Sequence record: KT895374.1
Reading direction: 5' to 3' (one strand)
DNA length: 64,000 bases
The notes beneath the pieces were generated by a model that had not been told where the DNA came from, searched no databases, and saw nothing but the letters and a program-made list of their open reading frames with translations. The position numbers and the translations under genes are program-made. Of this stretch, positions 1 to 63,407 are shown piece by piece (the stretch's first letter is position 1; each line of letters opens with the position of its first letter).

Positions 1-332
1 TAATAGAAATCATTCAAGATAAAAATGAAAAATATCATTTTTCTATTAATCAGAATAATGGATCTCTTTTGGATGAATTTAATTTTAATAAAGATTTTTC
101 AGGAGTTATAAAATTAATAGATGCTATATTAACTAATACTTACAAAGAAAATATTACATCTAAAGAAGAATATGAAAAAAACCTATATAAATTTCGCAAT
201 ATAGAAATAAAAACTAGAATAGAAAAAAATGATATAAGTGGAAAACAAGCCGAAGAAATGTTAAGTAGTTATCTGCATATTCGAATTATTAATGAGGAAA
301 ATAAAACTAAATTAAGATTATTAACAATATAG
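1..332 (+). CDS. 5'-truncated accessory protein, array A, with C-terminal TKLRLLxx motif
   Basis: Frame of ORF 69..332 is open back to the window edge (IEIIQDKNEKYHF, like VELIQDKDDNFHL of 3053..3580); ends EENKTKLRLLTI. Confidence 0.75.
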   Translation, partial: IEIIQDKNEKYHFSINQNNGSLLDEFNFNKDFSGVIKLIDAILTNTYKENITSKEEYEKNLYKFRNIEIKTRIEKNDISGKQAEEMLSSYLHIRIINEENKTKLRLLTI

Positions 333-345
333 GTGGTTATTTGAC

Positions 346-888
346 ATGACTGATATCTTTCAATCTATTCAAAATCAAATAATAAAAAAAGGATTTACTA
401 AGAATGAAAATAATTCATATGTAAAAGTAGACTTAGATAGTGCTCAAATTATCTCATTTGAAAAAACAGATATCGGATCAGTAATTAAGATTAATTATCG
501 TGATGATAAAAAATTTAAGTTAGTAAAAAATTTAGTTATACACATTTATAAAAAAGAAGAAAAAATATCTTACCATATTCATAAATATGATTATAGGAAT
601 AGTACAATAAAAGAGTATTTTTATCTGAAAAAATCAATTATCGAGTTTCAAAATATGATTTTAAAAATTATTTTAGAAGATGGATTTTTAGATAAAAATA
701 AGTCCTCTAATAAAAATGAGCCACCTAATGAAGAGATTGAATTTATAAATTTAGAAGTTAAGTTGAAAATAGATAATAATATTTATGACTATGATAATGC
801 TAAATTTGTTTTAGAAATGTTTGCTGAAGGGGATAATCCCATTCTTAATAAAGAAAATGAAACTAAATTAAGATTGCTAATTATGTAA
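346..888 (+). CDS. Hypothetical protein, array A paralog
   Basis: 180 aa ORF, SD aggtgg, ends KENETKLRLLIM. Confidence 0.8.
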   Translation: MTDIFQSIQNQIIKKGFTKNENNSYVKVDLDSAQIISFEKTDIGSVIKINYRDDKKFKLVKNLVIHIYKKEEKISYHIHKYDYRNSTIKEYFYLKKSIIEFQNMILKIILEDGFLDKNKSSNKNEPPNEEIEFINLEVKLKIDNNIYDYDNAKFVLEMFAEGDNPILNKENETKLRLLIM

Positions 889-891
889 AAT

Positions 892-1446
892 TTGAGGGTG
901 ATAAAATTGCAAGATTATATTGTTGAAGTCTTAGAAAATTTAGGCTATCGATTAAGAGTAAATCACTGGGATAAGGGTATTCCAAAAAAATCATACAGGA
1001 AAGGTAAAAGGAGTAAATCAATATTTGTTACTCTAGAAAAATCAACATGTTTTAAAGACATGATCTTGATTCAATATGTTAGAGATAATAGTCAATGTAG
1101 AAAATTTATACATGTTGATGCTTATGAAAAAGATAAAAAATATTATTTTAAAATAAAAATACATGATAGAGAAATGAATAAAGTGCCCACAAAGTATTAC
1201 TTTGATAAATCAATTAATGAAACTATAAGCATATTAACAGATGTTTTAAAAGGTAAACATGAATTAATTTTAGAATCTCATAAAGATGAAAAAAGTGAAA
1301 TCTTTTTAGATAATTTAAAAATAGAATTATATTTGGAGAATAATATTATGAATATTAACAATGCTAAAGTACTTATTAAATATGATGAAAAAAAGAAGAA
1401 TCTATCTGAAGAAAATAGAACTAAATTAAAATTACTAATGGTGTAG
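892..1446 (+). CDS. Hypothetical protein, array A paralog
   Basis: 184 aa ORF tightly packed behind previous one, ends EENRTKLKLLMV. Confidence 0.8.
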   Translation: MRVIKLQDYIVEVLENLGYRLRVNHWDKGIPKKSYRKGKRSKSIFVTLEKSTCFKDMILIQYVRDNSQCRKFIHVDAYEKDKKYYFKIKIHDREMNKVPTKYYFDKSINETISILTDVLKGKHELILESHKDEKSEIFLDNLKIELYLENNIMNINNAKVLIKYDEKKKNLSEENRTKLKLLMV

Positions 1447-1460
1447 AGGATGAATTAACC

Positions 1461-1976
1461 TTGTTAAATATAATAGAAAGTTTTTTAAAAGAAAAAGACT
1501 ATGATATACGTTATCTTACAAAAGAGAAAATTTTATTAAAAAAATCGGGTGAAAGAGATACTACTATAGAAAAATCTAAACAGTTTAAGTATTACGATCT
1601 TTTAAGAATAGAAACTATGAATTATGATGGATCCTATTATTATGATATTAATACCATTGAAATCATTAATAGAAATCAAAAATATAATTTTCTTATAAAA
1701 AATTATGAATTTTTTAAAGAAAAATATTTCTTTGATAAATCTTTAGATGATGTATTAATTTCTATTTTAAATGTTATGAAGGATAAACAAGAACTAGATA
1801 AACATATAGGGCATGGTTATAATGATCTAGATGCACGTAAATTTATGAATTTAAAAGTTTCTAATCAAATAGATAAAGAAGGTTTATCAATAGGTCCTTT
1901 AATTATTGATGCCTATCTTAGGGAACCTAAAATTAATGAAGAAAATAAAACCAAGTTAAAAATGTTGATATTATAG
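1461..1976 (+). CDS. Hypothetical protein, array A paralog
   Basis: 171 aa ORF, SD gagga, ends EENKTKLKMLIL. Confidence 0.8.
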   Translation: MLNIIESFLKEKDYDIRYLTKEKILLKKSGERDTTIEKSKQFKYYDLLRIETMNYDGSYYYDINTIEIINRNQKYNFLIKNYEFFKEKYFFDKSLDDVLISILNVMKDKQELDKHIGHGYNDLDARKFMNLKVSNQIDKEGLSIGPLIIDAYLREPKINEENKTKLKMLIL

Positions 1977-2165: not shown

Positions 2166-2459
2166 ATGAGTCAAAAAACACGTGTAGTTAACAAATATCA
2201 CGGTGAACCATATGACGTATACATCGGTCGAGGTTCAAAATGGGGAAACCCGTTTTCGCACATGAAAGGAACAAAAGCAGATTTTACTGTTGAAACTAGG
2301 GATGAAGCTGTTGCTGCATATAGAGAATGGATTAAAACGCAGCCTTATTTACTCGCTGATTTAAAATCACTAAAAGGGAAAACACTCTGCTGTTTTTGTA
2401 AACCAAAATCATGTCACGGGGATATCTTGGCTGAACTAGCTGACGCAATCGATCATTAA
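2166..2459 (+). CDS. DUF4326-family protein
   Basis: YDVYIGRGSKWGNPF and LKGKTLCCFCKPKSCHGDIL match the family signature as recalled; visibly more GC-rich than flanks; SD ggggag. Confidence 0.8.
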   Translation: MSQKTRVVNKYHGEPYDVYIGRGSKWGNPFSHMKGTKADFTVETRDEAVAAYREWIKTQPYLLADLKSLKGKTLCCFCKPKSCHGDILAELADAIDH

Positions 2460-2491: not shown

Positions 2492-2523
2492 ATATTATAG
2501 GAGGATGTTTGAAATGGAAAATT
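2492..2523 (+). repeat. 32-bp imperfect direct repeat, copy 2
   Basis: atattataggaggatgtttgaaatggaaaatt. Confidence 0.85.
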
Positions 2524-3041
2524 CTTTATCTTTTGACTTAATTCTTGAGGCTATTAAAAAAGATGGTTTAAAAGAAAGATTTACAGACGAATTAATGGAT
2601 GGTGAAAAGATAGTCCAATTTGAGAATTTTAATATATCTGAAACGGGTTATGGATTTATTATTATTGTTTTTCACCATAAATTTAATGACAATATAATGG
2701 TAATAGATAATAATGTAAAAGAAAATTATAGAATTTTCTTAAGATTTAATAAGAAAAACTCTTCTAAAAGAATAATTGAAATAAAAACTTTTAAATATGA
2801 AAGTTTAAACCTAAAAAGTATTTTATATCTTATCAACAAAGCAACTAACTTAGATGATTTCCAATTAGAAAAATATAGAAAAATTAATAATAGCGAATTG
2901 ACAGATATTGGAATTAATTATAGGCTTAAAAATGGTAAGTTAACTGATAAAATGATAAAAGATACTCTTAGATATCAACATCATGAAAATATGAGAGTAG
3001 GTAACGAAGTTCTAGCAAAATTAAAAATATTAGCAGTATAG
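2505..3041 (+). CDS. Hypothetical protein, array A paralog
   Basis: 178 aa ORF, SD ggagga, ends NEVLAKLKILAV. Confidence 0.8.
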   Translation: MFEMENSLSFDLILEAIKKDGLKERFTDELMDGEKIVQFENFNISETGYGFIIIVFHHKFNDNIMVIDNNVKENYRIFLRFNKKNSSKRIIEIKTFKYESLNLKSILYLINKATNLDDFQLEKYRKINNSELTDIGINYRLKNGKLTDKMIKDTLRYQHHENMRVGNEVLAKLKILAV

Positions 3042-3052: not shown

Positions 3053-3580
3053 ATGATTAATTTTATAAAAGACGCTCTTAATGAAGAAGGTTATATTGAA
3101 AAATCTACTGCAATACAATCTAAATATCATCATATGGAAAAAGAAAATAGAGAATTAATATTAAAACAAGATGACGTTAGTTGTTGGATTATCTGTCAGG
3201 ATAGTGATTTAAGAGTAGAACTAATTCAAGATAAAGATGATAATTTTCATCTTGGTTTTTGGGATATAGAAGATAATATAAATGGTTATCATTATTATAA
3301 TAGAAATCTAGAAGATTTATTGTCAGTAATAAAAGAAATATTTAATAGTAGTTATTTACTTAAAAGCTATTGTAATAATCAAGATTTTAATAAAAATCAT
3401 GAGATATTTATTCATAAAAGATTGGAAGCAAAAATTAATAGGAATTTTCTAAATAATGAAAATGCAAAAGATTTATTAGATTATTATAATAATAGACAAT
3501 TCAATAAAAATCATAACCGAATAAGAGAAAATTTCTTCACTGAAGAGATATTGACAAAACTAAGATTACTAGTAATATAA
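3053..3580 (+). CDS. Hypothetical protein, array A paralog
   Basis: 175 aa ORF, SD ggaga, ends EEILTKLRLLVI; GYHYYN shared with next ORF. Confidence 0.8.
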   Translation: MINFIKDALNEEGYIEKSTAIQSKYHHMEKENRELILKQDDVSCWIICQDSDLRVELIQDKDDNFHLGFWDIEDNINGYHYYNRNLEDLLSVIKEIFNSSYLLKSYCNNQDFNKNHEIFIHKRLEAKINRNFLNNENAKDLLDYYNNRQFNKNHNRIRENFFTEEILTKLRLLVI

Positions 3581-3597: not shown

Positions 3598-4107
3598 ATT
3601 AATCCTATAGAGAATTTTATTATTGAAGAGGGATATAAATTACAGGAATTAGATGATGAATATTTCCATTTTATAAAGAAAGAAAATCATTTATTGGTAT
3701 TAAAATTAGATGATTCTAATTTTCAGATTAGTCTTCCTAATAATAATAATAGTTTAAAAATAGAAGTAGTTCTGGATGCAGATGAAAAATCCCATTATAG
3801 TATTTATCTTTTAAAAGATGATTTAGGTGTAGAAGGATATCACTATTATAATAAAACATTAGAGGATCTATTTTTATCTTTAAAAGATATTATTGATGGT
3901 AATTATTTATTTAAAAAATATTATACAAACAAAGAATTTCGTAAAAATGATGAAATATTTAAATACAAAAGACTAGAGGTGAGAATCAAAAGGGGTTTAT
4001 TAAAAAGTAGGGAAGCAAAACATATATTAAGTTATCATAAAAATCATTTAGACGATAGTTTTTTTAATGAAGAGATTATAACGAAACTAAAATTATTAGC
4101 GTTATAA
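3598..4107 (+). CDS. Hypothetical protein, array A paralog (probable ATT start at 3598)
   Basis: Frame open from 3598 (INPIENFIIEEGY) aligning with MINFIKDALNEEGY of preceding paralog; SD gaggtg 7 nt upstream; ends EEIITKLKLLAL. Confidence 0.75.
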   Translation: MNPIENFIIEEGYKLQELDDEYFHFIKKENHLLVLKLDDSNFQISLPNNNNSLKIEVVLDADEKSHYSIYLLKDDLGVEGYHYYNKTLEDLFLSLKDIIDGNYLFKKYYTNKEFRKNDEIFKYKRLEVRIKRGLLKSREAKHILSYHKNHLDDSFFNEEIITKLKLLAL

Positions 4108-4110: not shown

Positions 4111-4146
4111 AGAGCTATCTATAATTAGATAGCTCTATTTTTTTTA
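4111..4146. terminator. Intrinsic terminator between convergent genes
   Basis: agagctatcta-taat-tagatagctct followed by T-tract. Confidence 0.8.
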
Positions 4147-4996: not shown

Positions 4997-5009
4997 TAAA
5001 TTTAAAATA

Positions 5010-5021
5010 AATATATATTAT
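5010..5021 (+). promoter_or_regulatory. Early-type promoter AATATATATTAT
   Basis: Recurring intergenic motif at heads of non-structural operons. Confidence 0.65.
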
Positions 5022-5700: not shown

Positions 5701-5979
5701 ATGTCCGAAAGAAAAACCATTAAAAAGAATGTTAGATTTGAGGGAAATAAATATCCCATTAAAGTTACATTTTGTGAAGGAAAAATAGAATTAATTTCAA
5801 TATATGATAAAAAAAATAAAGCTGTCTACAATATTGAAGTACCTGAAAATTCAAGAATGTATAGTGACCAAAATTTGATCCGAAGAGCTATAGAATTGCA
5901 TATTGAAGAGAAAGATAAAAATTATGAAAAGAATAAAGAATCTATTAAAAGACTTAAAAGTTGGAACGGAAAGCTTTAA
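5701..5979 (+). CDS. Small protein, WxGK(L/I)-tail family copy 1
   Basis: TIKKNVRFEGNKY...SWNGKL. Confidence 0.75.
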   Translation: MSERKTIKKNVRFEGNKYPIKVTFCEGKIELISIYDKKNKAVYNIEVPENSRMYSDQNLIRRAIELHIEEKDKNYEKNKESIKRLKSWNGKL

Positions 5980-5995
5980 CTAGGGGGTAGATTAA

Positions 5996-7777: not shown

Positions 7778-8560
7778 ATGAAATCCTATAGAGTGAATAG
7801 AAAATATATAGATCCTGATTTATTATCTAAAATGTTAGATGATTATAGTGACTCAATAGATATTATAAGTCTATTGGAAAACTATAAGATAAGAACAGAT
7901 AGTTTAGGAAAAATTATAGATCTGGTTAAAGATGATATAATTCCAGAAAATAGAGAAATATTAAGTTTTATTCTTACAAATCTAACAGATATTTTAATTT
8001 ATAAAAATAAAAGAGTATTAGAAGAATTTATATTTAATGAAATACCTAATCATTTTTATTATATGAGAGATGTCTTTATTTATAATGAATTTAATACAAA
8101 AATTGTAAGTAGATTTATGAAAGAATATGATGTAGGCTTAGAAATTGGTTGTGATATTATAAATAGAAACGGTTTAGACATAAAATTAATTGATATTTTA
8201 GAAAAGAAATATCCATCAGAAGAGGAAATAAGTTTAATTTGGCAAAAACTAACACCTATGTTAAATGAAGATCATAAAGAGATTATAAAGAAAAAGAAAG
8301 AAAATATAGATTGGAACTTACTTATCGAAAAAAATGATTTATCACCATCTTTTGTATATTATTTAGAATTAGATAAGTATGAAGAATTTAAAAATAATCC
8401 ACTAACATACTCTAATATTAAATACCCTAGTTTTGTAATTGAAAACCGTAAATATTTAAATAATGAAGAAAATTTAAATGGATTAAAAGATAACTGGTTC
8501 TTACTTAATACAAGTTCAAAAAAAGAAATAAGTGATTTAATAAAATTATTTGAAATCTAG
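7778..8560 (+). CDS. Hypothetical helical-repeat protein, array B
   Basis: ATG 7778 after SD agggga; IDWNLL repeat remnant; ends KEISDLIKLFEI. Confidence 0.75.
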   Translation: MKSYRVNRKYIDPDLLSKMLDDYSDSIDIISLLENYKIRTDSLGKIIDLVKDDIIPENREILSFILTNLTDILIYKNKRVLEEFIFNEIPNHFYYMRDVFIYNEFNTKIVSRFMKEYDVGLEIGCDIINRNGLDIKLIDILEKKYPSEEEISLIWQKLTPMLNEDHKEIIKKKKENIDWNLLIEKNDLSPSFVYYLELDKYEEFKNNPLTYSNIKYPSFVIENRKYLNNEENLNGLKDNWFLLNTSSKKEISDLIKLFEI

Positions 8561-8574: not shown

Positions 8575-9345
8575 ATGAAAAAAAGAAAACCCACTGAAAT
8601 AGAAAAAGAATTTATTAGGACAAATTCAAAGCTAATAAATTATAACCAAATTATATATGAACTTATTTTAGATAAAGAATTACTAGATATTGTAAACCTA
8701 CACATGCTAGATTGGGATTATATAAGTAAATATATATTAGATTATCCTGAATTATTAAAGGATAATCTAATATTCAATTATTTTAATTTTATTGAATGGG
8801 ACGTATTATTTAATTTTAATGCAAGAAAAAAGTTAGGGAATAAATTCTTTAAAGATTTCTTGAAATATGCTATAGAAAAGATAGAAGAAAATGAGAACAA
8901 TAGAAGTTGTTTTAATGCAGATTTCTTTATTTATCCAACAATTTTCTTTATTTATGACTTTAAATTAGATATGAAATCATTTCATATGGTAAGAAAAATT
9001 TGGGGTAAAGAAAAAGAATCAATGGTATGGAGTGGACTATCATCTTATCTAGACGTTAATAAACATAGAAGTATAATAAAAAAGTATAGGAATGAAATTC
9101 ACTGGGATAGAATAATATTAGATAATATAACTGTTATCGATCATAAGTTTTTTGTTAGATACAGAGAGAATATATTAAAATGCAGTCCATACATCTTAAA
9201 TGAAATTTTTATTAATTCCTCAGACAAAAATTTGATTAAGGAATTAATAACAGTTGTTGAAGAACCTGTATATAAAATAAATTCTCACATATATTTCAGA
9301 AATGACAAAGAACTTTTAGCTTTAGCTAAAATGATAGAATTGTAG
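8575..9345 (+). CDS. Hypothetical degenerate Trp-repeat protein, array B
   Basis: LDWDYIS, IEWDVLF, IHWDRII; ends KELLALAKMIEL. Confidence 0.75.
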   Translation: MKKRKPTEIEKEFIRTNSKLINYNQIIYELILDKELLDIVNLHMLDWDYISKYILDYPELLKDNLIFNYFNFIEWDVLFNFNARKKLGNKFFKDFLKYAIEKIEENENNRSCFNADFFIYPTIFFIYDFKLDMKSFHMVRKIWGKEKESMVWSGLSSYLDVNKHRSIIKKYRNEIHWDRIILDNITVIDHKFFVRYRENILKCSPYILNEIFINSSDKNLIKELITVVEEPVYKINSHIYFRNDKELLALAKMIEL

Positions 9346-9356: not shown

Positions 9357-10151
9357 TTGAAAGTATTAAATTTTGAAGATATAAGTTTTCTGAAAAGAAA
9401 TCCTGACTTAATAAATACAAATGAATTAGTAACTGGTAATTATAGATTAAGTAAAGAGCTATTGGATAATATTGAACTTAGTGATTATGATTGGCAATAT
9501 ATTAGTAATAATCTAATTGAATATAAGTATTTATTTGATGAGGTAAATATATTTGATTATTTCTATAATTTATATTGGGATGCAATATTTGCAAATAATG
9601 TTTTTGAAGAAAAATCTTATAAGAGATTTATAAATAAGTTAGTTGAACTCTATAAAGAAACTAAACATCAATTTCTTTATAAAGATTACATTAATATTAA
9701 GGATGTAATATCAGGAATTGTATCAAGTAAAAAAATTGATGAAGAAGATATTTCTAATTTTGAATATATTGAAAATGTAACTAAAAGTTTTATTAACTCT
9801 AGCGGTAGCCCTTATTTGTGGGAAATTATTTCTTATAATTTAGAAATAGAAAGAGATTTTAGAATTATTGAAAAATTTAAAGATAAAATTATTTGGGATA
9901 AATTATTATCTCATTCATATGAAAAAATTAATTTAAAATTTTATAGTAAATATAAAGAATATTTTGGTGGTGGTGATAAAATTTTTATAGTTTCCCAAAA
10001 TAGTAATAAAGACTTAGTATATAAAATTATAAAAGAAAATGTGAATAGTAGTGATGAGTATAAAAATTATATTATTAAATGTATTAGTAAAAATAAATCT
10101 TTATGTAATGATAAGGATATTAATACTCTTATTAAGTTATATCCTATTTAA
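9357..10151 (+). CDS. Hypothetical degenerate Trp-repeat protein, array B
   Basis: YDWQYIS, LYWDAIF, IIWDKLL; paralog of previous ORF; ends KDINTLIKLYPI. Confidence 0.75.
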   Translation: MKVLNFEDISFLKRNPDLINTNELVTGNYRLSKELLDNIELSDYDWQYISNNLIEYKYLFDEVNIFDYFYNLYWDAIFANNVFEEKSYKRFINKLVELYKETKHQFLYKDYINIKDVISGIVSSKKIDEEDISNFEYIENVTKSFINSSGSPYLWEIISYNLEIERDFRIIEKFKDKIIWDKLLSHSYEKINLKFYSKYKEYFGGGDKIFIVSQNSNKDLVYKIIKENVNSSDEYKNYIIKCISKNKSLCNDKDINTLIKLYPI

Positions 10152-14486: not shown

Positions 14487-14705
14487 CAATTATATTCATA
14501 TGAATTCGCTACTATTCATATCGCCCATATCTTAATGGACTGCTTATGATCTCTCATAAGATTAGACTATATCAAAACCCTCATCTTAAATGTTAGGGTT
14601 CTCTCTGTTTCGGTTATCAATCACTTATAACCTACTCTACTGACTTATTCTTAAATAAGCTTTCGATAGTCGTTGAACTATAAAACGTATTGAAATAATG
14701 AATTA

Positions 14706-14717
14706 AATATATATTAT
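14706..14717 (+). promoter_or_regulatory. Early-type promoter inside intron 1, antisense to it
   Basis: Exact aatatatattat, 37 nt before ATG 14754. Confidence 0.65.
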
Positions 14718-15537: not shown

Positions 15538-16047
15538 TTGGATGTGATTAAAATTAAATTAGATGATGGTACACTTTCACACTTAATGGAATCTTTTAAA
15601 AATAACTCTAAGAATTTTGAGGAAGAATGTATAGATTTATTAATTGATGATCCTGATGGTTCATTACTATTAAACATCTTACTAAATTTTAAATTAAGTG
15701 ATGAATTCCTAAAATTGAATGTAAAAAATTATAGACATAATCATTGGATTTATTTATCAGTTTTTCAAAAACCTAGTATAGACTTTACTGTAAAATATTT
15801 TGAAGAGATGAATCGTGGAAATGTAGTAATAGGTAATAAAAATGTAAATATCGAAATTATATATAGGATGGCTGATACTTTTAATGAATCTCAATGGGAT
15901 TTAATTAGTGAAAGACTTTATTTACCTAAAGAATTTTTAATTAAGTATGCAAATAAAATTAATTGGAATACTATATATGAAAGAAAAGACGAATTAATAG
16001 GATTTGATGAAGAAGTAGAAGTAATATATAAAATGTATAAATTATAA
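15538..16047 (+). CDS. Degenerate Trp-repeat protein, array C
   Basis: HWIYLSVFQKPS, QWDLISERLYLPKEFL, INWNTI; ends EEVEVIYKMYKL; start codon uncertain. Confidence 0.7.
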   Translation: MDVIKIKLDDGTLSHLMESFKNNSKNFEEECIDLLIDDPDGSLLLNILLNFKLSDEFLKLNVKNYRHNHWIYLSVFQKPSIDFTVKYFEEMNRGNVVIGNKNVNIEIIYRMADTFNESQWDLISERLYLPKEFLIKYANKINWNTIYERKDELIGFDEEVEVIYKMYKL

Positions 16048-16065: not shown

Positions 16066-16791
16066 ATGACAATAGAAGAGCAGGAACTAATAAAACTTAT
16101 AAACAAGGAACTTGAAAAAGATAGACCTGATGGAAATGAAATTAACCATTTAATAGTAGATTTTGATATAGAAAATAGAATAAGACTCTCTAATAATTTT
16201 CTTAAAAATTATGAGAATTATATTGATTGGAAAGTAATACTTATAGATTTTAATTTAGATGAGGAATTTCTAGAGAGGTATGAGGACAAAATAGACTGGA
16301 ATGATGTTGCGGTTTATCAAAAATTGTCAGAGTCATTTATTGAACGTTATCACAATAGATTGAACTGGGATGTAGTATCGGTTGAACAAGATCTGTCAGA
16401 AACATTTATAGAGGAATGGGAAGGAAATATTAATTGGTATGCAATAAGCATGTATCAGGAATTATCAAGAGAATTTATTGAAAAACACCAAGATAAATTA
16501 AATTGGCATAATATATCTTTAAATCAGAAATTGAGTGAAGATGATATAGTTCAATTTAAGGATTTAATTGAATGGGAAACTATATCTCACGCTCAAGATC
16601 TATCATTAGAATTTATTGAAGAGTACAAAGATATGTTAAATTGGGATTTTTTATCTCGACATCAATATTTATCAGAGACATTTATTTTAGAAAATAGAAG
16701 TAGAATTAATTGGAAAAAATTAAGAAGTAATAGTCAAATATTTTTTACAGAAAAATTAGAGACAGTATATAAACTAGTAGTAAATCTATAA
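16066..16791 (+). CDS. Tryptophan-repeat protein (tandem 22-aa repeats), array C
   Basis: About 8 copies of [IL][DN]WxxISxxQxLSExFIExYxDx; ends EKLETVYKLVVNL. Confidence 0.85.
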   Translation: MTIEEQELIKLINKELEKDRPDGNEINHLIVDFDIENRIRLSNNFLKNYENYIDWKVILIDFNLDEEFLERYEDKIDWNDVAVYQKLSESFIERYHNRLNWDVVSVEQDLSETFIEEWEGNINWYAISMYQELSREFIEKHQDKLNWHNISLNQKLSEDDIVQFKDLIEWETISHAQDLSLEFIEEYKDMLNWDFLSRHQYLSETFILENRSRINWKKLRSNSQIFFTEKLETVYKLVVNL

Positions 16792-16820: not shown

Positions 16821-17525
16821 ATGAATAATTATGAAAAAGAATTTGAAAAATCTATCAAAAATAAACGTGACAATATTAACAGTGAAATAGTAGCTTTTAG
16901 TCATTTAAATAATGTCCGTTTATCGGATAAATTTTTTAGAAAATATGGAGATCGTATTCATTGGTCCACTGTAGTCATGTATTTTCAATTAAGTGAAGAT
17001 TTTATGACTATGTATGAAGATAAAATAAGCTGGTATTTAGTTGCCTTTTGTCAAAAAAATTTATCAGAAGAATTCATAAAAAAATATAAGGATAAGTTAA
17101 ATTGGGATTCTTTATGTTTGCATCAAAAATTATCTGAAGAGATGATAGAAAATAATATTGAAAAAATTAATTGGCGCAATATATCTGAAGGTCAAATCTT
17201 ATCAGAAGAGTTCATTGAAAAATATCAAGATAAGTTGAATTGGATTAATATAAGCATTAGTCAAACTTTATCAGAAGAGTTCATAATCAGGAATCTAAAT
17301 AAATTAAATCTCGCATATATATCTGAATGCCAAACTTTATCAGAAAGATTTATTGAAAAATATCAAGACCGATTAGATTGGGCATCTATTTCTGAGCATC
17401 AAAAATTATCAGAAAATTTTGTTATCAGGTATCTTGATAAAATTTATTGGAATCAATTGTTAAAAAATCATAAAGTAGAAATTACCAGCAAAATAATAAC
17501 TTCTAAACAACTACGCAATCTATGA
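16821..17525 (+). CDS. Tryptophan-repeat protein (tandem 22-aa repeats), array C
   Basis: About 8 repeats e.g. LNWDSLCLHQKLSEEMIENNIEK. Confidence 0.85.
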   Translation: MNNYEKEFEKSIKNKRDNINSEIVAFSHLNNVRLSDKFFRKYGDRIHWSTVVMYFQLSEDFMTMYEDKISWYLVAFCQKNLSEEFIKKYKDKLNWDSLCLHQKLSEEMIENNIEKINWRNISEGQILSEEFIEKYQDKLNWINISISQTLSEEFIIRNLNKLNLAYISECQTLSERFIEKYQDRLDWASISEHQKLSENFVIRYLDKIYWNQLLKNHKVEITSKIITSKQLRNL

Positions 17526-28490: not shown

Positions 28491-28495
28491 TGCTA

Positions 28496-55156: not shown

Positions 55157-55198
55157 TCTATTATTTATAGACTATTTCTTATTATTAATTAATTTTAA

Positions 55199-55210
55199 AG
55201 TATATATTAT
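55199..55210 (+). promoter_or_regulatory. Early-type promoter
   Basis: agtatatattat. Confidence 0.6.
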
Positions 55211-55242: not shown

Positions 55243-55581
55243 ATGTCAATGGAAATATTTTTTAGTAGAAGTGTAATTAATATAAAAACTAATAATCCAA
55301 AAGAAGATCATTTAAAAATTTTATTAGGGTGTATAAGTAAAGCAAAGAAAGATTCCTTTTTAAAAGAGTTAAATGAGTTAGGCGTTAATGGATTTTTAAA
55401 CGAATCATACTTGCTAAGAAAATATAGGTCTTGGGATTTTATAGATATAGAAATTGACTTTATATTTAATATGGATAAAGGTTGGGAATGTGAGTATAAT
55501 ATTGATTATCAAGAGGTTAATGGACCTGTAAAGGAATATTTTAGATTATTAGATACTAGGGATAAATTAGAAAAAATTTAG
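55243..55581 (+). CDS. Small hypothetical protein (RxLDT-tail pair, copy 1)
   Basis: SD aaggag; ends FRLLDTRDKLEKI. Confidence 0.7.
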   Translation: MSMEIFFSRSVINIKTNNPKEDHLKILLGCISKAKKDSFLKELNELGVNGFLNESYLLRKYRSWDFIDIEIDFIFNMDKGWECEYNIDYQEVNGPVKEYFRLLDTRDKLEKI

Positions 55582-55591
55582 GAGGAATCTG

Positions 55592-55939
55592 ATGTCAGGA
55601 GTAGAAGTAACCATATATAATAATATAGTAGATATTTATTTCTTAGATCTCCATTACTTGATAGAAAATAAATTATTTTTTGAATATGCTACAGAGGATG
55701 AAAAAAATAAATATACTGATCTTATTAGAGAATTAAACATGATAGGAAATTTTGAAGGTATAGCAGAAGAGATTAGGAGATTTATCATTGGGAAAGATGG
55801 AGTATTAGAATGCCTATTTGAATTTTATCCTACATTTGATGACTATAATCTTTTATTTGAAATTACATTTGAGAGTTTTGAAAAAATACCTAATCCTATG
55901 AGAAAATTAGATACTGAGAGATTACTTAAGGAACTTTAG
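55592..55939 (+). CDS. Small hypothetical protein (RxLDT-tail pair, copy 2)
   Basis: SD aggagg; ends MRKLDTERLLKEL. Confidence 0.7.
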   Translation: MSGVEVTIYNNIVDIYFLDLHYLIENKLFFEYATEDEKNKYTDLIRELNMIGNFEGIAEEIRRFIIGKDGVLECLFEFYPTFDDYNLLFEITFESFEKIPNPMRKLDTERLLKEL

Positions 55940-55964
55940 CTGACCGTATTGAATTTAATGATTA

Positions 55965-55976
55965 AATATATATTAT
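55965..55976 (+). promoter_or_regulatory. Early-type promoter
   Basis: aatatatattat. Confidence 0.6.
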
Positions 55977-56849: not shown

Positions 56850-57677
56850 ATGAATAAAATAGAAGAAGAATTAATTAGAAGAAAAAACCAATATGAGCAA
56901 GAATTAAAATCCAAATATGAAACACTTAATACTATGCTAATTAATTATAGTAAGAAAGGAGGAAATGTTGTTATTAGATCATCTATTGACGGAGATGATG
57001 AGTTTGATAATGAATTAGAAATATATAACCCTACTGGAGATCAATATTTTGATAATAGTATTAGAGATTATGATTTTGAAACTAAATTATACCATAATAG
57101 TTTTATAAATTATGTTAATTCTATAGTCTCTAATTTTCAGCTAAGTGAGCATGTTATAATGGAAATGTTAAAATATATTGATGAAAATAAACTATTTATA
57201 TATCAGAATCTTTCTCCTGATTTTATATTAAAACTAGAGAGATATATTGAAATTAATTGGGATCTGATCTTATCCAATCATGTACTGGATCCTCATTTCC
57301 TTAGAGAAAATAGAGAAGAGTTTGATTCTGATACTTTAATTAGAAATAAAAAATATAGTATTTCAGATTTAATTTTTATATATTCTGATAATATATACAT
57401 TTATGGAACATCTCGTGATACTAATGTCTTATCAATTAATAGAATATTTAGACTTAGAAAATTAAATAAAGACGATGTTGAATTAATAATTGGTCATTGT
57501 AAAAATTACTCAAGAAGTAAATACTTTTGGCAGGAATTAATCGAAAATATCCCAAAAATAATTGATATTTCATTTATTAAAAAATATAAAAGTATAATAG
57601 ATCTATGTAAAAATGATATTTTGGAAAGTAATGTTAGTAATGAAGTAAAAACCTATGTAAAATTACTTATGATATAA
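56850..57677 (+). CDS. Degenerate Trp-repeat protein, array D
   Basis: YQNLSPDFI, INWDLILSNHVLDPHFL; ends NEVKTYVKLLMI. Confidence 0.8.
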   Translation: MNKIEEELIRRKNQYEQELKSKYETLNTMLINYSKKGGNVVIRSSIDGDDEFDNELEIYNPTGDQYFDNSIRDYDFETKLYHNSFINYVNSIVSNFQLSEHVIMEMLKYIDENKLFIYQNLSPDFILKLERYIEINWDLILSNHVLDPHFLRENREEFDSDTLIRNKKYSISDLIFIYSDNIYIYGTSRDTNVLSINRIFRLRKLNKDDVELIIGHCKNYSRSKYFWQELIENIPKIIDISFIKKYKSIIDLCKNDILESNVSNEVKTYVKLLMI

Positions 57678-57689: not shown

Positions 57690-58526
57690 ATGAAAAGTTC
57701 TCAAAGATTTGCTAGATTAAATCGTTTAAAATCAGACAAAAAATTTAATGCAATTGTTGATAAATATGAAAAGAAAATAAGCAAGACTATTATAAATTTT
57801 AATTCTTTTAAAGAAACTAATTTAATAAGAAAACACTATTCAAAATATAGTGAAGAACATGATTTAGAAATGGATATTGAAAATACAAAATCATTTATTG
57901 CACGTTATGATCGTATGAATGATGATTTTCAAGATATTATAAGACGTCTCTATATTGAATTTGATTATGAGTTAGGAGAGATATTAAAAAAATTTTCTAT
58001 TAGTGAAAACTTAATTTCTAAAAATAAAAAATATTATTCTGAAGAAACTTGGTCTGAAATTAGTTCCAGACAAAAATTAAGTGAAAAATTTATTGAACTC
58101 CATGAACAAGAAATAAATTGGGAAAATATAATATCAAATAGAAATATAAGTATAGAAATATTAAAAAAATTCCAAAATCATTTTACGATAAGTAATTTAT
58201 TAAATTCAAAAAGATTAGATTTAAAAGGAATTGTAAGATTTCTAAATAAACCTTTTATTTATAACTTAGAATATTTAATAAAAAATTATCATGAGGATAT
58301 AATTCATTTGGATTATAAATTAACATTAGAGGAAATGGAAATATATCTTAGAGTGGTAAATAGTAATAACACTTATACAAAAAGAAAATTTATTTTAAAT
58401 CAAAATATTAATGAAAAAATAGTTCTAGATAATATAGAATTCTTTAATGGTTATGAGGAAATTTTATTAGAGAATAAAAATATTTCTAATAAACTTAGAA
58501 CTATTTTGGAAATGTCTAGAATTTAG
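57690..58526 (+). CDS. Degenerate Trp-repeat protein, array D
   Basis: TWSEISSRQKLSEKFIELHEQEINWENII; ends NKLRTILEMSRI. Confidence 0.8.
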   Translation: MKSSQRFARLNRLKSDKKFNAIVDKYEKKISKTIINFNSFKETNLIRKHYSKYSEEHDLEMDIENTKSFIARYDRMNDDFQDIIRRLYIEFDYELGEILKKFSISENLISKNKKYYSEETWSEISSRQKLSEKFIELHEQEINWENIISNRNISIEILKKFQNHFTISNLLNSKRLDLKGIVRFLNKPFIYNLEYLIKNYHEDIIHLDYKLTLEEMEIYLRVVNSNNTYTKRKFILNQNINEKIVLDNIEFFNGYEEILLENKNISNKLRTILEMSRI

Positions 58527-58543: not shown

Positions 58544-59197
58544 ATGACTAATGATGATAAAAAATTTCTAGACTGTTTAAATAAATATAATGAATTTATA
58601 GATTGTAGTCCAAACTTACATGATATTTTAATAAATAATGAGATAAGTGAAAATCTACTTGATGAATATTCAAAATTCTTTGATTATAAAACATGGAAAG
58701 TTATAAGTCTAACACAAAAATTTTCTAAAAAATTTATGAAGAAACATCAAGAATTTATCTATTTTAATGATATGCTGGAATTTAATGAAAAAATCAATTT
58801 AGATTTGGATACTGTAAGTGAATTTAAAGAATATTTTGCAGGTCTTTTGATTTTAAAAAAATTTCAATCAAGAGAAGCTATAAATATCCTATTTCCTAAT
58901 ACTGACAGTATTTATGAATTATTTCACAGGCTAGTTGGACGATACTCTAGATCTTTATTTGATGTTTATCCCGATATAGTCAATGATAACGAATTTGTGG
59001 AATTCCAACTATATAGTTTTAAGAAAAATTCAACTCATAGTATAGAATATTCTAAAAAATTCTTTAGTCTAATAAAAATTAATAAAGAAATGTATATTAG
59101 ATACCCAGAATTATTAAACAGATATTCTAATGTGATATTAGAAAGTCCAAATGTAGATAATGAAGTAAAAGTCCTTTTAAAATTACATTCAATATAA
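58544..59197 (+). CDS. Array D paralog
   Basis: TWKVISLTQKFSKKFM; ends NEVKVLLKLHSI. Confidence 0.8.
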   Translation: MTNDDKKFLDCLNKYNEFIDCSPNLHDILINNEISENLLDEYSKFFDYKTWKVISLTQKFSKKFMKKHQEFIYFNDMLEFNEKINLDLDTVSEFKEYFAGLLILKKFQSREAINILFPNTDSIYELFHRLVGRYSRSLFDVYPDIVNDNEFVEFQLYSFKKNSTHSIEYSKKFFSLIKINKEMYIRYPELLNRYSNVILESPNVDNEVKVLLKLHSI

Positions 59198-59214: not shown

Positions 59215-59946
59215 TTGATTGAATATGATGATAGTATTTTATTAAATGCTATAGAAGAGTTTAATAATAGAAAATTGAAAATAGAAGAAGAATTTACAAT
59301 AAAAAATAAATCCATATCTTCTAAAAAAGTTTCTAACAAATTAGAAAAGTTTTATACTCTTTCTTTTTTATCAGGTAAAAGAAAAAATGAAATAAATGAA
59401 AATAAAACCATCTTTATTGATTCTATTAAGGATATTTTAAAAAATAAAAAAATTAGTAGTAGATTTATTAGTGAAAATATAAAATATTTAAAAGAGTATG
59501 ATTTAGTTTGGGATTTATTAATTAGATATCAAGATTTAACAAAAGATTTTATTGCTAAAAATATAAAAAAATTTAAATTAGATGACATTCTTAATTCTGA
59601 AAAATTTTCTATAATAGAAATAAATCTACATCTCTATAAAAATAACTTAATTTTACATTTAGGCTTAGATTATTTCTTTACTTTATTTTTTGACAATATA
59701 TTAAAAACTAGCAAGTTGAATACTGATGATTTAGAATCATTTATGAATTATATAGTAGAAGATAAATATTTAAATATAGCAGTTAAGAGAAATAATCTAT
59801 TCAAAAACTTTTTAATTAAACAAAATTTCAATAAGGAAATTCTTTTAAAATATGAAGATTTTCTTACACCACATTATTCACAATTATTAAAGAATGAGAA
59901 TATAGATGAAAGCATAAAAACTAAAATTAGATTATTAAATCTATAA
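59215..59946 (+). CDS. Array D paralog
   Basis: SD gaggtg then TTG 59215; VWDLLIRYQDLTKDFI; ends ESIKTKIRLLNL. Confidence 0.8.
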   Translation: MIEYDDSILLNAIEEFNNRKLKIEEEFTIKNKSISSKKVSNKLEKFYTLSFLSGKRKNEINENKTIFIDSIKDILKNKKISSRFISENIKYLKEYDLVWDLLIRYQDLTKDFIAKNIKKFKLDDILNSEKFSIIEINLHLYKNNLILHLGLDYFFTLFFDNILKTSKLNTDDLESFMNYIVEDKYLNIAVKRNNLFKNFLIKQNFNKEILLKYEDFLTPHYSQLLKNENIDESIKTKIRLLNL

Positions 59947-59961: not shown

Positions 59962-60696
59962 ATGTTAAGAGTAGGAAGTTTAATGTTAGAAAAAAGAATA
60001 GAAAAGTTTGAGAACTTTATTAATGGTTTTATAAAAGATATGGATGAGTTTATACCAGACGTAGATATTAATATTATATCTAAAGACCAGTCTGCATTAG
60101 ATAAGATTGTTGATATAAAGAAGTTAACAAGTGATAAATTTGTAAATTCTTTTATGGAAAAAGTTCTAGTGGATTTGGGTGAAGATATTCTAAATATTTT
60201 TGAAAATCATATTGTTGATGGTGAAGTTATTATTAAGTATAAGTCTTATCTTAATAACAGCATGACGCTATGGTATGAAATATTAGAAGATAAAAGAAAT
60301 TATAACAATGAACTGATTTTAAAAATTAAGGATAAGTTTATTGTTGAAAAACTAATAACTTCTCATAGATTTAATTTTAGAGAATTGGCTGAATCCTATA
60401 ATAGAAATTATGAGGATTTTCTTTATAATTATTTAGAAGTAGCAATATGGAATAATGTCTTATTTAACCAAGAAGAAATAGATGACATCTTAAGATTAAA
60501 ATTTTTAGAATATACGGATGATGAGGAATTTAATGAAAACTTAATAATTCGTTTTCTAACCACTCAAAATATAACCAAAAAGCTATATATGGATAATATT
60601 AGCTTTTTTAAAGAAGAATCATATAAAAGAAAATTATTAGAAAATAAATTAATTTCCAGTGATTTAAAAACCTTAATTAAATTAGAATTTGTATAG
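59962..60696 (+). CDS. Array D paralog
   Basis: LWYEILE..YNNELILKIKDKF..SHRFNFREL; ends SDLKTLIKLEFV. Confidence 0.8.
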   Translation: MLRVGSLMLEKRIEKFENFINGFIKDMDEFIPDVDINIISKDQSALDKIVDIKKLTSDKFVNSFMEKVLVDLGEDILNIFENHIVDGEVIIKYKSYLNNSMTLWYEILEDKRNYNNELILKIKDKFIVEKLITSHRFNFRELAESYNRNYEDFLYNYLEVAIWNNVLFNQEEIDDILRLKFLEYTDDEEFNENLIIRFLTTQNITKKLYMDNISFFKEESYKRKLLENKLISSDLKTLIKLEFV

Positions 60697-60708: not shown

Positions 60709-61374
60709 ATGGCTTTAGAAGGAGATAATATGTTTTTAGAATTTATATATCATTTTGGAGAAAATATATTGCATAACGGTGGTCATTGTGATGAAGCAGA
60801 TGTACTTAATATAATATTAAAGAGTTATAATGTTAGTACTAAGATTTTAGATGATAATTATGAATATATTTTCCCCCAGCATCTAGAAACAATAAGCAAG
60901 TATCAAAAACTTGATGAAGAATTTATAAAAAAATTAATACCTAATTATGTAAATAAGATACTAGAAGGAAATAAAAAGACATTTCTATCTAAAGAATTTA
61001 TCAAAAACAACATTAACTATTTTGATGTTGATAAACTAGTCGATAGTGGGGGATTTACTTTAACTGAACTTGCTGACTTGTATTCGATGTCTTTAGAGTT
61101 CTTTATCTGGAATAACTTATCGACTGTAATCGATTATGAAGTATTAAGTGATTTAGAAAAAAAGAAATTTATAGAACTTTTTAAGGAAGAGGAAAAAGAA
61201 GAATTACTCTATTATCCTACTATTTATTTCTTATCAACTCATTCCATTTCAGAAGATATACTTTTTGAGTATATGGATTTCTTTAAATCATCAAACACTT
61301 TTATTCAGAAAGTAATAACAAACCCTAAGAATTCTCAAGAAGTTAAAACAAAATTAAATTTACACATTTTATAA
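60709..61374 (+). CDS. Array D paralog
   Basis: ISKYQKLDEEFI; ends QEVKTKLNLHIL. Confidence 0.8.
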   Translation: MALEGDNMFLEFIYHFGENILHNGGHCDEADVLNIILKSYNVSTKILDDNYEYIFPQHLETISKYQKLDEEFIKKLIPNYVNKILEGNKKTFLSKEFIKNNINYFDVDKLVDSGGFTLTELADLYSMSLEFFIWNNLSTVIDYEVLSDLEKKKFIELFKEEEKEELLYYPTIYFLSTHSISEDILFEYMDFFKSSNTFIQKVITNPKNSQEVKTKLNLHIL

Positions 61375-61395
61375 TCAAGTCTGGAGGGCTTAAAA

Positions 61396-61998
61396 GTGAA
61401 TTTTAATTTTGATGAATTAGATACAGAGGAAATAATTGAAATTCTATTAAAAAATAAAATAGATGAAAAAACATTGGATGAATATTCTGAATGTTTTACT
61501 GAAGATTCATGGTTTGCAATAAGCATAAGACAAAAAATTTCTAATGATTTTATCAAAAAATATTTAGATAAAATTGATTTGAATAATATTTTTATGTATA
61601 ACCCATATGTAAAATTAGATAAAGAGCTTATTGAAAAAAATATTAAAAGTTTCGAAAGATTTGGAGTCTTAGTTAAAATACCTTTTGAAGAATCTGCACC
61701 TTTATTGTATCCTAACTCAAAAGATCCCCTAAGAGCGTTAATTATAGATAATTTTAGTGATATAGTTAATAATAAGTCTATCTATAGAAAACTAATAGAA
61801 TGTAAGAATTGTTATAATATTATATTAAGTATGGTACAGATTGTCCCATTTAAAAAAAGATTTATCAAAGATATGTATCTTGATAATTATATCTATAACA
61901 AATATTCAGAATTATTAAATAAGTATCCTGAATCGCTATTACTAAATAAACACCTACCAGAAAAAGAAAGAACAATTATAAAATTAAAAATACTTTAA
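61396..61998 (+). CDS. Array D paralog
   Basis: SWFAISIRQKISNDFI; close to 58544..59197; ends EKERTIIKLKIL. Confidence 0.8.
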   Translation: MNFNFDELDTEEIIEILLKNKIDEKTLDEYSECFTEDSWFAISIRQKISNDFIKKYLDKIDLNNIFMYNPYVKLDKELIEKNIKSFERFGVLVKIPFEESAPLLYPNSKDPLRALIIDNFSDIVNNKSIYRKLIECKNCYNIILSMVQIVPFKKRFIKDMYLDNYIYNKYSELLNKYPESLLLNKHLPEKERTIIKLKIL

Positions 61999-62004
61999 GG
62001 AGGA

Positions 62005-62706
62005 TTGATTGGAATGAAAGAAGGTAATGAACTTTTAGAGTTAGGAATAAAATATTTTAATGAATCACTGTCTGAAGGAGAAAGAACGCTAAAAAGGGAA
62101 ACTTTAAAAAGAGTAAGTAGAGTTGGAGCAATTTACGGTTATGGAAAAGAAAATTATGACTTTATAGAAAATAAACTATTGGAAAAAATTGAAAATCTTC
62201 AAAAAAATATTCATGAATTATTTAAAACATTTTCAATTGATGAAGATATCATTAAAAAGAATAGTGAATATATTGACTTAGCAACATGGAGAAACATACT
62301 ACATAATAAAAAGTATTCTAATGAATTAATTACTGAATATAAGGAGAAATTTCATATTAATGGTATCTTAAAATCTAATAGAGGTTTTAGATTAAGGGAT
62401 ATCGCACTCTTATATGAATATAGCTATATCGGATTGATAAATGCTCATCTAGATAATATAATTGGAGATTATGTATTAAATGAAGAAGAAATTGAAGATG
62501 TTATACAGTTGAGTAATTTAGCCAGTAATGGTTATCAATACTATGCTTCTAGATGTGAATTCATTAATACTCAAAGAATAACGAAAAAAATATACCTTAA
62601 CAATCTACATTTCTTTCATCTATTACCAGATTTTATGGAAGAGTTAGAAAATAATAAATTTATATCAGATGAATTGAGGACTATCATAAAATTGAAAAAT
62701 ATTTAA
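62005..62706 (+). CDS. Array D paralog
   Basis: TWRNILHNKKYSNELI; ends DELRTIIKLKNI. Confidence 0.8.
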   Translation: MIGMKEGNELLELGIKYFNESLSEGERTLKRETLKRVSRVGAIYGYGKENYDFIENKLLEKIENLQKNIHELFKTFSIDEDIIKKNSEYIDLATWRNILHNKKYSNELITEYKEKFHINGILKSNRGFRLRDIALLYEYSYIGLINAHLDNIIGDYVLNEEEIEDVIQLSNLASNGYQYYASRCEFINTQRITKKIYLNNLHFFHLLPDFMEELENNKFISDELRTIIKLKNI

Positions 62707-62717
62707 AGGAGTTAGCA

Positions 62718-63407
62718 ATGTCAAAATATAAAGGTAGTATAATCTTAGAAGAACGCATAAATGATTTTGAATTTTCTTTATCATCTGTAGGAAAGGTTTT
62801 AGAAGATTGTACAAAGGATGATTTGCATAAGATATATAATATTAATGGAGATAACGGTAATGAAATTATAAGAAGTCTGATTATTGAAAAACTTGAAGAT
62901 CTTCATAATTATATCCATCGTATATTTAAAAATTATGAAATTGATGAAGAAGTTATTATTCAGAATGACTCTTATATTGGTTTAGAAACTTGGGATTTTA
63001 TATTGCAGGAAAAATTCTATACAAATGATTTAATTTTAAAATATAAAGAAAAATTTCAGATTTATAATGTTATAAGTTCGAATAGGTTTAAATTAAGAGA
63101 AATATCAAATTTATATAATCAACATTATACTATCATTATAAATAAATATTTAGATACTATAATTGCAAATTATAATTTGGATGAAAAAGAAATAGATGAT
63201 GTGATTCAATTAAGTACCTTAAAATATGATTGTTATGCTAGTTTTGGTAAAAGATGTAAATTTATTAAAAATCAGAGAATTACAAAAGAAGTGTATCTTA
63301 ATAATTTAGAATTTTTCCATCAGATGCCAGCCTTTATAGAGGAATTAAAAAATAATGAATTAATTTCAGATGAGTTAAGAACTATTATAAAATTGAGAGA
63401 AATTTAG
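62718..63407 (+). CDS. Array D paralog
   Basis: TWDFILQEKFYTNDLI; ends DELRTIIKLREI. Confidence 0.8.
   Translation: MSKYKGSIILEERINDFEFSLSSVGKVLEDCTKDDLHKIYNINGDNGNEIIRSLIIEKLEDLHNYIHRIFKNYEIDEEVIIQNDSYIGLETWDFILQEKFYTNDLILKYKEKFQIYNVISSNRFKLREISNLYNQHYTIIINKYLDTIIANYNLDEKEIDDVIQLSTLKYDCYASFGKRCKFIKNQRITKEVYLNNLEFFHQMPAFIEELKNNELISDELRTIIKLREI

Follow-up and report, generated by a model that had tools for sequence, protein, structure and literature searches.

A shared C-terminal helix on about one fifth of the genes of vB_BpuM-BpSp, a jumbo phage, and the possible role of this helix as a common interaction element

Small proteins encoded in early-type operons of the jumbo Bacillus phage vB_BpuM-BpSp end in the same helix of 13-14 residues. 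We found this C-terminal tail, aligned on the stop codon, in 22 ORFs of the window, by which we mean the whole 64,000 nucleotides analysed (124001-188000 of record KT895374.1), and across the genome it is carried by 67 of 315 ORFs (~21%), all on the plus strand. According to structure predictions, the carriers have at least two very different folds. The reading that best explains these observations, to which we assign a probability of roughly 0.4, is that a terminal half-repeat was retained as a shared interaction helix and transferred to other folds.

The tail-bearing ORFs of the window lie on the plus strand in four arrays, and all 22 tails match the description given in the initial annotation of this DNA. 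Array A consists of gp166 (1..332, with its 5' end upstream of the window), gp167 (346..888), gp168 (907..1446), gp169 (1461..1976), gp171 (2514..3041), gp172 (3053..3580) and gp173 (3694..4107), which is the last gene of the array and is followed by a convergent gene. Array B comprises gp182 (7778..8560), gp183 (8575..9345) and gp184 (9357..10151), and array C comprises the Trp-repeat proteins gp192 (15586..16047), gp193 (16066..16791) and gp194 (16821..17525). Array D includes gp233 (56850..57677), gp234 (57690..58526), gp235 (58544..59197), gp236 (59215..59946), gp237 (59962..60696), gp238 (60709..61374), gp239 (61396..61998), gp240 (62014..62706) and gp241 (62718..63407). The weakest matches among the 22 tails are those of the ORFs ending at 8560 (gp182, the weakest, with Asp at position -8) and 3041 (gp171, with Ala at -8), and the tail of gp194 is in register with Gln at -5. 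As annotated initially, the ORF ending at 16791 (gp193) is deviant, with its register shifted by +1 and its tail one residue longer than the rest. That annotation overlooked that the motif occurs genome-wide, that array A begins at gp165, upstream of the window, and that array D continues into a tenth member, gp242 (63420..64000, plus strand), which is cut by the window end and has its tail 148 bases past it. Throughout the genome, all carriers are found in tandem arrays of the kind typical of duplication, and the median spacing from a tail ORF to the next gene is 13 bases, versus 29 for other plus-strand ORFs.

For early promoters, which are used by the virion RNA polymerase, we took the consensus of phage AR9 (PMC5312081). 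Exact matches on the plus strand are located at 5009..5021, which is the nearest upstream of array B, and at 14705..14717, upstream of gp190 and array C, in each case with one minus-strand ORF between, and a third exact match (55964..55976, plus strand) heads the run of gp231, gp232 and array D. A match with one mismatch (55198..55210, plus strand) lies upstream of gp229 and gp230 (55243..55939, plus strand), two small ORFs whose tails are borderline (p 0.004 and 0.0006) and which are immediately 3' of this early-promoter-like site. From these promoter motifs, with their consensus taken from AR9, we infer that the tail carriers are probably early genes.

From 44 tails located outside the window we built a position matrix and tested it against a null made up of every internal 14-mer of the window ORFs. 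Of the 22 tails listed, 18 reached p<1e-3 and 20 reached p<1e-2, which indicates that the motif is enriched above background. Among the 54 other window ORFs, one scored p<1e-3 and two scored p<1e-2 (gp229 and gp230). A second matrix, trained solely on 42 tails of the Trp-repeat family, recovered the tails of 23 non-Trp ORFs at p<1e-3 versus 0.27 expected, and these ORFs include array A, array B and gp107-115. The motif is almost confined to the exact C-terminus, and across the proteome just two internal 14-mers reach scores like those of the tails. No structural, replication or minus-strand gene scores, consistent with the claim that core genes lack the tail. Taken together, these results indicate that position-specific enrichment of the tail is far beyond chance.

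Within families, conservation is higher in the tail than in the body (0.51 versus 0.21 in array A, 0.38 versus 0.23 in array D and 0.45 versus 0.25 in gp107-115), and tail identity between families is 0.15-0.36 versus 0.075 for random C-termini. The codons used for Thr(-8) (ACT 25, ACA 13, ACC 9, ACG 1) and for Leu(-4), where six codons occur, are near genome usage, and the conserved Thr, Lys and Leu codons of the tail match genome usage in general. Because the choice of codons at Thr(-8) and Leu(-4) is near that of the genome, conservation of the tail acts at the amino-acid level, as purifying selection on the protein. The information peaks at -8, -4, -1 and -5 fall on one helical face (180-300 degrees), and residue identity is variable on the other, hydrophobic face. 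AlphaFold2 models place the tail in a helix at residues 218-228 of gp241 and 164-174 of gp172 (pLDDT 83-96), which bears out the amphipathic helix proposed in the initial annotation; such high values in both models are just as compatible with a packed structural element. Apart from a final hydrophobic residue, the last three positions vary: the seven residues most frequent at -3 (Tyr, Leu, Lys, Glu, Asn, Gly and His) account for 55 of the 67 tails, and -2 is similarly spread. Glu or Asp occurs at -12 in 34, at -11 in 24 and at -2 in 28 of the 67 tails, and these frequent acidic residues would argue against a membrane-binding helix of the MinD/FtsA type, which is basic, hydrophobic and acid-free. 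On a purely structural view, Lys(-5) could form a salt bridge to the terminal carboxylate, and Ser/Thr(-13) could serve as an N-cap.

Most carriers belong to one tryptophan-repeat alpha-solenoid superfamily. Arrays C and D show visible 22-residue repeats, which are intact in gp193 and gp194 and eroded in gp233, and match PHROGs 3532/11920. The AlphaFold2 model of gp241 is an all-alpha solenoid (pLDDT 86.7) that matched BFVD entries for phage G gp558/560/562 and for entomopoxvirus Trp-repeat proteins (probability 0.94-1.0, E 7e-4 to 1e-2); the Trp-repeat family was named in entomopoxvirus genomes and is also annotated for phage G and for BpSp gp045, gp053-058 and gp123-127. When tails were removed and the bodies were compared with hhalign, arrays C and D and four arrays outside the window were joined at a probability of 94-100%, array B showed a weak link to the Trp arrays (40-54%), array A showed no link to any other array and gp107-115 showed none to other carriers. 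Array A aligned with array D over the last 19 residues only, ending at the C-terminus, and both array A and gp107-115, which lies outside the window, have nothing detectable in common with the Trp superfamily except the tail. We rejected membership of array A in the Trp-repeat family on the grounds that its proteins contain 0-2 Trp and have no profile link to that family, and that its member gp172, in a moderately confident model (pLDDT 75, seven sequences in the alignment), is predicted to form a helix, seven strands and three helices, a combination of beta-sheet and long helices to which the tail is joined by a low-confidence linker of variable length. These comparisons uphold two earlier claims, that the bodies are not one family and that array A lacks Trp repeats. 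An exhaustive profile search with array A against 1.84 billion proteins returned only 7 BpSp proteins, which suggests that array A is confined to BpSp.

The tail is in phase with the last 22-residue Trp repeat, of which the preceding Asn(-19) and Ile(-16) are part, a relationship that was overlooked initially. Judged from the sequence, the tail looks like a specialised terminal half-repeat, which makes a structural cap the simpler reading for arrays B-D. Among 93 database matches to a profile of arrays C and D, 88 are without the tail, and the five with it are three BpSp proteins, P0133 and P0119. Cellular and metagenome Trp-repeat homologues (P0002-P0035; 88/93 profile matches) end in other C-terminal domains instead, which indicates that the Trp-repeat fold does not need the tail. 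In other public sequences, F-box (P0102) or RING (P0111) domains occur fused to Trp repeats, which suggests that the repeat is used as a binder on a constant adaptor. An independent 11.3-kb JGI metagenome contig encodes 17 tandem Trp-repeat ORFs that have the same tail register as BpSp, with Asn at -19, Leu at -14, Ser/Thr at -13, Lys at -5, Leu at -4 and Leu at -1. Position -8 in these ORFs is Leu in 14 of 17 and Ile or Met in the other three, a nearly set-wide change as would be expected from partner co-evolution or a founder effect. Analogous terminal helices of different lengths are present on Trp-repeat proteins of LPJP1, phage G and one IMG/VR contig, and related tails, lineage-specific in sequence, end Trp-repeat proteins of other phages. 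The literature that we searched contains no published description of such a tail and, in agreement with the initial annotation, no phage system of such design.

We propose that the tail may have originated in a phage-borne Trp-repeat alpha-solenoid family, as its specialised final half-repeat. In BpSp, it is a predicted amphipathic alpha-helix held by purifying selection at the free C-terminus of ~67 small proteins. No fewer than two of the carrier families, array A and gp107-115, have bodies with no detectable relationship to the solenoid. The generic hydrophobic face (-14, -10, -7, -6 and -3) would pack on the carrier's own body, whatever its fold, and the identity-conserved face (Glu/Lys at -11, Thr at -8, Lys at -5, Leu/Met at -4 and Leu/Ile/Val at -1), which is presumably exposed, would provide a common interface. 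Through this interface, carriers that otherwise diversify would contact one shared partner, encoded by the phage or the host, or each other. The initial interpretation is supported in part, for the motif, its helical character, its spread over bodies with no detectable relationship and its absence from core genes, with docking on one common partner as its hypothetical part. A bolder version, which we regard as rather doubtful, is that the helix is a portable docking tag through which ~67 early proteins, predicted to adopt two or more folds, plug into one hub that co-evolves with the tag in each phage lineage; if true, the carriers would constitute a modular arsenal for host takeover or counter-defence that is undescribed for phages.

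The main rival to an interaction helix is that the tail is purely structural, a partnerless C-terminal capping helix that seals the hydrophobic core of one hugely expanded superfamily and was inherited by descent, with array A and gp107-115 as extremely diverged or chimeric descendants that retained it. This alternative is a serious one that we nevertheless consider somewhat unlikely. It accounts for the phase of the tail with the repeat, including Asn(-19)/Ile(-16), for the confidence of the modelled helices (pLDDT 83-96), for the confinement of carriers to tandem arrays and for the comparable end helices on Trp-repeat proteins of LPJP1, phage G, the IMG/VR contig and the JGI contig; the differing lengths in the first three are expected of a family-specific inherited cap. 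However, the identity of Thr, Lys and Leu is retained on a fold that is predicted to be a beta-sheet and is unrelated to the solenoid, the tail is more conserved than the repeats that it supposedly caps, cellular Trp-repeat homologues do without it, and the linker that precedes it in gp172 is of low confidence and variable length.

A further alternative is that the tail is a C-terminal degron, through which a host or phage protease would clear early proteins at a set time. The free hydrophobic C-terminus and the putative early operons are consistent with this idea, as is the proximity of some arrays to genes for a phage MoxR-type AAA ATPase and a DUF2201 metallopeptidase/VWA protein. However, these genes (gp083/gp084) encode a MoxR-VWA pair rather than an FtsH-like protease and also occur in AR9, which is tail-less. 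Recognition of known C-terminal degrons, such as ssrA/ClpX-type tags, hinges on their final 2-3 residues, and in BpSp the residues at -3 and -2 differ widely among tails, the spacing of the conserved positions -8, -5, -4 and -1 is helical rather than that of an extended peptide, and the models predict a packed helix. Because of this variability and spacing, docking on a host AAA+ protease, which had been among the partners suggested initially, is disfavoured, and we consider a degron improbable.

Selection on RNA, in which the last codons hold a ribosome-binding site or start overlap for the next gene in coupled operons, is less probable still. An SD-like tetramer lies within the last four codons in 16 of the 67 BpSp tails, those with Gly/Glu at -3 in tightly packed arrays outside the window being of this SD-like type, and TAG stops are enriched (24 of 67 tail ORFs versus 32 of 150), with SD-like bases directly following 13 of the 24. 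In IMG/VR contig UViG_3300037189_028117, neighbouring proteins that are unrelated have just their final four residues in common, and these correspond to an SD plus ATGA overlap. However, no SD is present in any of the 22 window tails and no ribosome-binding site overlaps them, the strongest positions (-8, -5 and -4) are upstream of any SD and vary synonymously at genome usage, and the tail is retained on the array-final genes gp173, gp184 and gp194, which largely refutes this explanation for the window. Least probable is a nascent-chain effect, in which the stop-fixed motif pauses termination from within the ribosome exit tunnel and aids re-initiation on the next gene: strict register on unrelated bodies and very short gaps to the next gene would fit, but the amphipathic helical pattern, in which one face is generically hydrophobic, suits a folded protein element, array-final genes keep the tail, and we know of no precedent for such an effect.

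Early genes of jumbo phages are mostly orphans, and a tail on so many of them offers a handle for study: it defines a testable protein set, predicts a single interface and suggests a way in which a common pathway could take in new early proteins. Arrays C and D are members of the widespread tryptophan repeat family of phages, entomopoxviruses and giant viruses, array B being a less certain one, and they share its multi-copy tandem arrangement. They differ in the exactly C-terminal conserved tail, which is undescribed in that family, for which it would be the first conserved functional landmark, and which array A and gp107-115 have without repeats. Solenoid repeat proteins have conserved capping modules, such as LRR C-terminal caps, that are fold-specific. 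Like these caps, the tail is a terminal element in repeat phase and more constant than the variable repeats; unlike them, it also ends a protein predicted to be a beta-sheet (gp172). Even if the tail is only a cap, it would be a clear case of a terminal element outliving its original fold. The initial annotation drew an analogy to poxvirus ankyrin/PRANC proteins, which holds for the architecture, in that many viral paralogues have repeat bodies that vary and a C-terminal element that stays constant. It fails for the adaptor itself, which is a domain of ~40-50 residues there and a single 14-residue helix in BpSp that also occurs on non-repeat folds; a Pfam scan of ten tail-bearing proteins gave no F-box, PRANC or ankyrin match, and to our knowledge the Bacillus host has no ubiquitin system (Skp1/cullin ligase). 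Short terminal peptides for docking or targeting include the capsid-targeting leader of T4 internal proteins and the C-terminal peptides of FtsZ and SSB. The BpSp carriers appear to be early rather than virion genes, unlike those of the T4 leader, but the layout is alike, a terminal element of ~10-15 residues on different proteins that, in the BpSp case, would likewise be read by one partner.

The initial annotation had proposed that 22 accessory proteins encoded in four arrays share a predicted C-terminal helix, here called the tail, and the tails that it quoted were reproduced exactly by reading back from each stop codon that it listed. The window spans record positions 124001-188000 of KT895374.1, with a 9-kb stretch matching at 100% identity, and belongs to the 255,569-bp genome (G+C approximately 25%) of Bacillus phage vB_BpuM-BpSp (BpSp), an AR9/PBS1-like jumbo phage of the genus Takahashivirus. 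The record annotates all 22 ORFs, which are gp166-169 and gp171-173 (array A), gp182-184 (array B), gp192-194 (array C) and gp233-241 (array D), as "hypothetical protein". We scored the genome with a position matrix derived from the 22 tails in leave-one-out fashion and found many further tails outside the window. With an inclusive matrix, the tail was detected on 67 of 315 non-overlapping ORFs called genome-wide. Outside the window, ORFs were chosen by a simple greedy rule, and the totals may therefore be a few off the 318 features of the record. All 67 tail ORFs lie on the + strand and encode 99-400 residues (median 185), and only two internal 14-mers in the whole proteome reached a comparable score.

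Two tests were built to avoid circularity, one trained on Trp-repeat tails only and the other on tails outside the window only. A matrix from 42 tails of the Trp-repeat superfamily picked out, among the other ORFs, 23 tails at p<1e-3, against 0.27 expected, including those of array A, array B and gp107-115, a family outside the window. The matrix from 44 outside-window tails recovered 18/22 of the listed window tails at p<1e-3 and 20/22 at p<1e-2, compared with one and two, respectively, of the 54 other ORFs in the window. Counting back from the C-terminus, positions -13 to -1 carry more information than the null, and a weaker Asn signal stands at -19. Thr occupies -8 in 48/67 tails, Lys -5 in 46/67, and Leu or Met -4 in 50/67 and 12/67, respectively; Leu, Ile or Val is found at -1 in 66/67 and at -10 in 55/67, and Thr, Asp, Ser or Asn at -13 in 55/67. 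The positions conserved in identity (-12, -11, -8, -5, -4 and -1) form one helical face, and a second face (-14, -10, -7, -6 and -3) is hydrophobic but variable in residue identity. Searches of Pfam, PHROGs and PDB sequences with the tail-bearing proteins returned no informative family, with all PHROG matches of unknown function and none in the PDB, and the literature searched held no description of the motif. A separate set of three paralogues, gp177, gp178 and gp179 (window 5701-6608, +), has its own common ending, with Trp-Asn/Asp-Gly-Lys near the C-terminus.

Families that carry the tail show higher conservation in the tail than in the rest of the protein. When the last 16 residues were removed, BLASTP clustering joined 39 ORFs into one superfamily, of which 36 have the tail by a stricter rule and a 37th, gp193, has it one residue out of register. 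Profile comparison with hhalign joined arrays C and D and four arrays outside the window at 94-100% probability and array B at 40-54% only, and linked array A and gp107-115 to nothing. Full-length alignment of array A with array D covered no more than the final 19 residues, ending exactly at the C-terminus. AlphaFold2 predicts an all-alpha solenoid for gp241 (array D; pLDDT 86.7), in which residues 218-228 form the tail helix (pLDDT at least 90). The gp172 model (array A; pLDDT 75, seven sequences in the alignment) has a helix, a seven-stranded sheet and three helices, and its tail is a helix at 164-174 (pLDDT 83-90) preceded by a low-confidence linker, whose length differs between array A paralogues. 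Foldseek found no significant neighbour of either model in the PDB. In BFVD, the gp241 model matched its own paralogues, gp558/560/562 of phage G and entomopoxvirus "tryptophan repeat gene family" entries. Homologue searches with arrays A and D and gp107-115 returned BpSp only, and a profile of array A, run against 1.84 billion representative proteins, retrieved just seven BpSp proteins; by these searches, array A is an orphan. Within array A lies gp170 (window 2166-2459, +), a DUF4326 protein (Pfam E 1.3e-24) without the tail, which looks like an unrelated inserted gene. Convergent with the array is gp174 (window 4144-4956, -), with a sub-threshold Pfam match (E 5e-4, under the curated cut-off) to phiKZ-like internal head proteins.

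We favor, with a probability of roughly 0.4, the reading that the tail is a putative common interface, under a constraint external to the body. The main rival, to which we give only a somewhat lower probability, has the tail serving solely as a structural cap that was inherited by descent. A cap would fit the phase that the tail keeps with the repeat, the high model confidence of its helix and the analogous helices of other phages. The tail of array C and D proteins continues in phase from the last repeat, with Ser/Thr at -13 and an acidic residue or Lys at -11 occupying the expected start of a further repeat, and it therefore looks like a specialized terminal half-repeat; internal repeats do not score with the tail matrix, and the tail is distinct from them. 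Trp-repeat proteins of Listeria phage LPJP1, phage G and an IMG/VR contig end in a helix with the same start, of lineage-specific sequence and length. An 11.3-kb metagenome contig, JGI Ga0494760_0000739 (locus L017, 3-7285), encodes 17 tandem small Trp-repeat ORFs, mostly with 4-base overlaps, whose tails keep the BpSp register; at -8 they have Leu in 14/17 and, in the remaining three, Ile or Met. This array is an uncultivated relative of the BpSp system. The common interface is favored over a cap because residue identity is kept on two predicted folds, because the Trp-repeat fold is tail-free elsewhere and because the change at -8 is nearly array-wide in another genome.

A less likely explanation is that tail conservation has an RNA-level cause. 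In 16/67 tails, from densely packed arrays beyond the window, the final three or four codons also form the Shine-Dalgarno (SD) site of the next gene; the overlap occurs in 0/22 window tails. A C-terminal "motif" that plainly has an RNA-level cause is found in IMGVR_UViG_3300037189_028117 (loci L011 and L014), where many neighboring ORFs, Trp-repeat or not, end in the same four residues, the sole stretch that the unrelated ones have in common, and the four codons encode an SD and an ATGA stop-start overlap. In BpSp, the codons at the conserved Thr (ACT 25, ACA 13, ACC 9, ACG 1), Lys and Leu (six different codons) are spread much as in the genome at large, which indicates that the amino acid is what is constrained. 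TAG stops are over-used by tail ORFs (24/67, vs 32/150 other + strand ORFs; genome-wide, and in window arrays A-D), with SD-like bases directly after TAG in 13/24, and thus the stop often abuts the ribosome-binding site of the following gene or is itself a part of it. Use of the tail as a degron and an effect on termination are likewise less likely than the common interface. A DNA-level recombination linker was rejected, as synonymous sites of the tails are poorly conserved. Reading of the tail by an FtsH-like phage protease was also rejected: gp083/gp084 are a MoxR AAA ATPase and a DUF2201 metallopeptidase/VWA protein, a pair also present in AR9. A phage-nucleus import signal was dropped, because a recent review places AR9-like phages outside the Chimalliviridae and states that many jumbo phages outside that family have no chimallin homologues, and because nuclear import there does not use terminal signals (PMC13282480).

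The 13-base early-promoter consensus of the AR9 virion RNA polymerase (PMC5312081) was found in intergenic positions upstream of the arrays; the site for array A precedes the window, and the others are at window positions 5009, 10151, 14705, 55198 and 55964. Intergenic sites with 0-1 mismatch lie at these five positions, 38285 and 45877 (+) and at 37390 (-); genome-wide there are 44 such sites, 29 of them intergenic by our ORF calls. The motif thus appears to be conserved between AR9 and BpSp. Because 59/67 tail ORFs follow such a site without an opposing gene in the interval, compared with 100/150 other + strand ORFs, early expression of the tail ORFs is likely. Elsewhere in the window, pieces of a B-family DNA polymerase are annotated on three separate - strand ORFs, gp206 (32522-33298), gp207 (33579-34535) and gp217 (43349-45235).

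AR9 itself gave no tblastn match to gp193, and its first 50 kb, the part in synteny with the tail-rich region of BpSp, contained no BpSp-type tail. Paralogues of ~230-415 residues at AR9 24579-30840 (locus L016; gp030, gp031 and gp034-036) have their own conserved C-terminal helix. They are likened by position alone to BpSp gp088-091 (record 66129-70938), which score marginally with the BpSp matrix and are placed downstream of the ATPase/VWA pair. Several non-Trp ORFs of LPJP1 (locus L008, 14392-55054) resemble its Trp-repeat tails in closing with a hydrophobic residue, two variable positions, Asn/Ser and Ile; with just five training tails, the enrichment is weak (3 vs 0.55 at p<0.01). Cellular and metagenome Trp-repeat homologues have other C-terminal domains instead of the tail. 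Among public Trp-repeat proteins, one (P0102) joins an N-terminal F-box to the repeats and another (P0111) follows them with a C-terminal RING finger, and thus the Trp repeat is elsewhere joined to ubiquitin-ligase adaptor domains.
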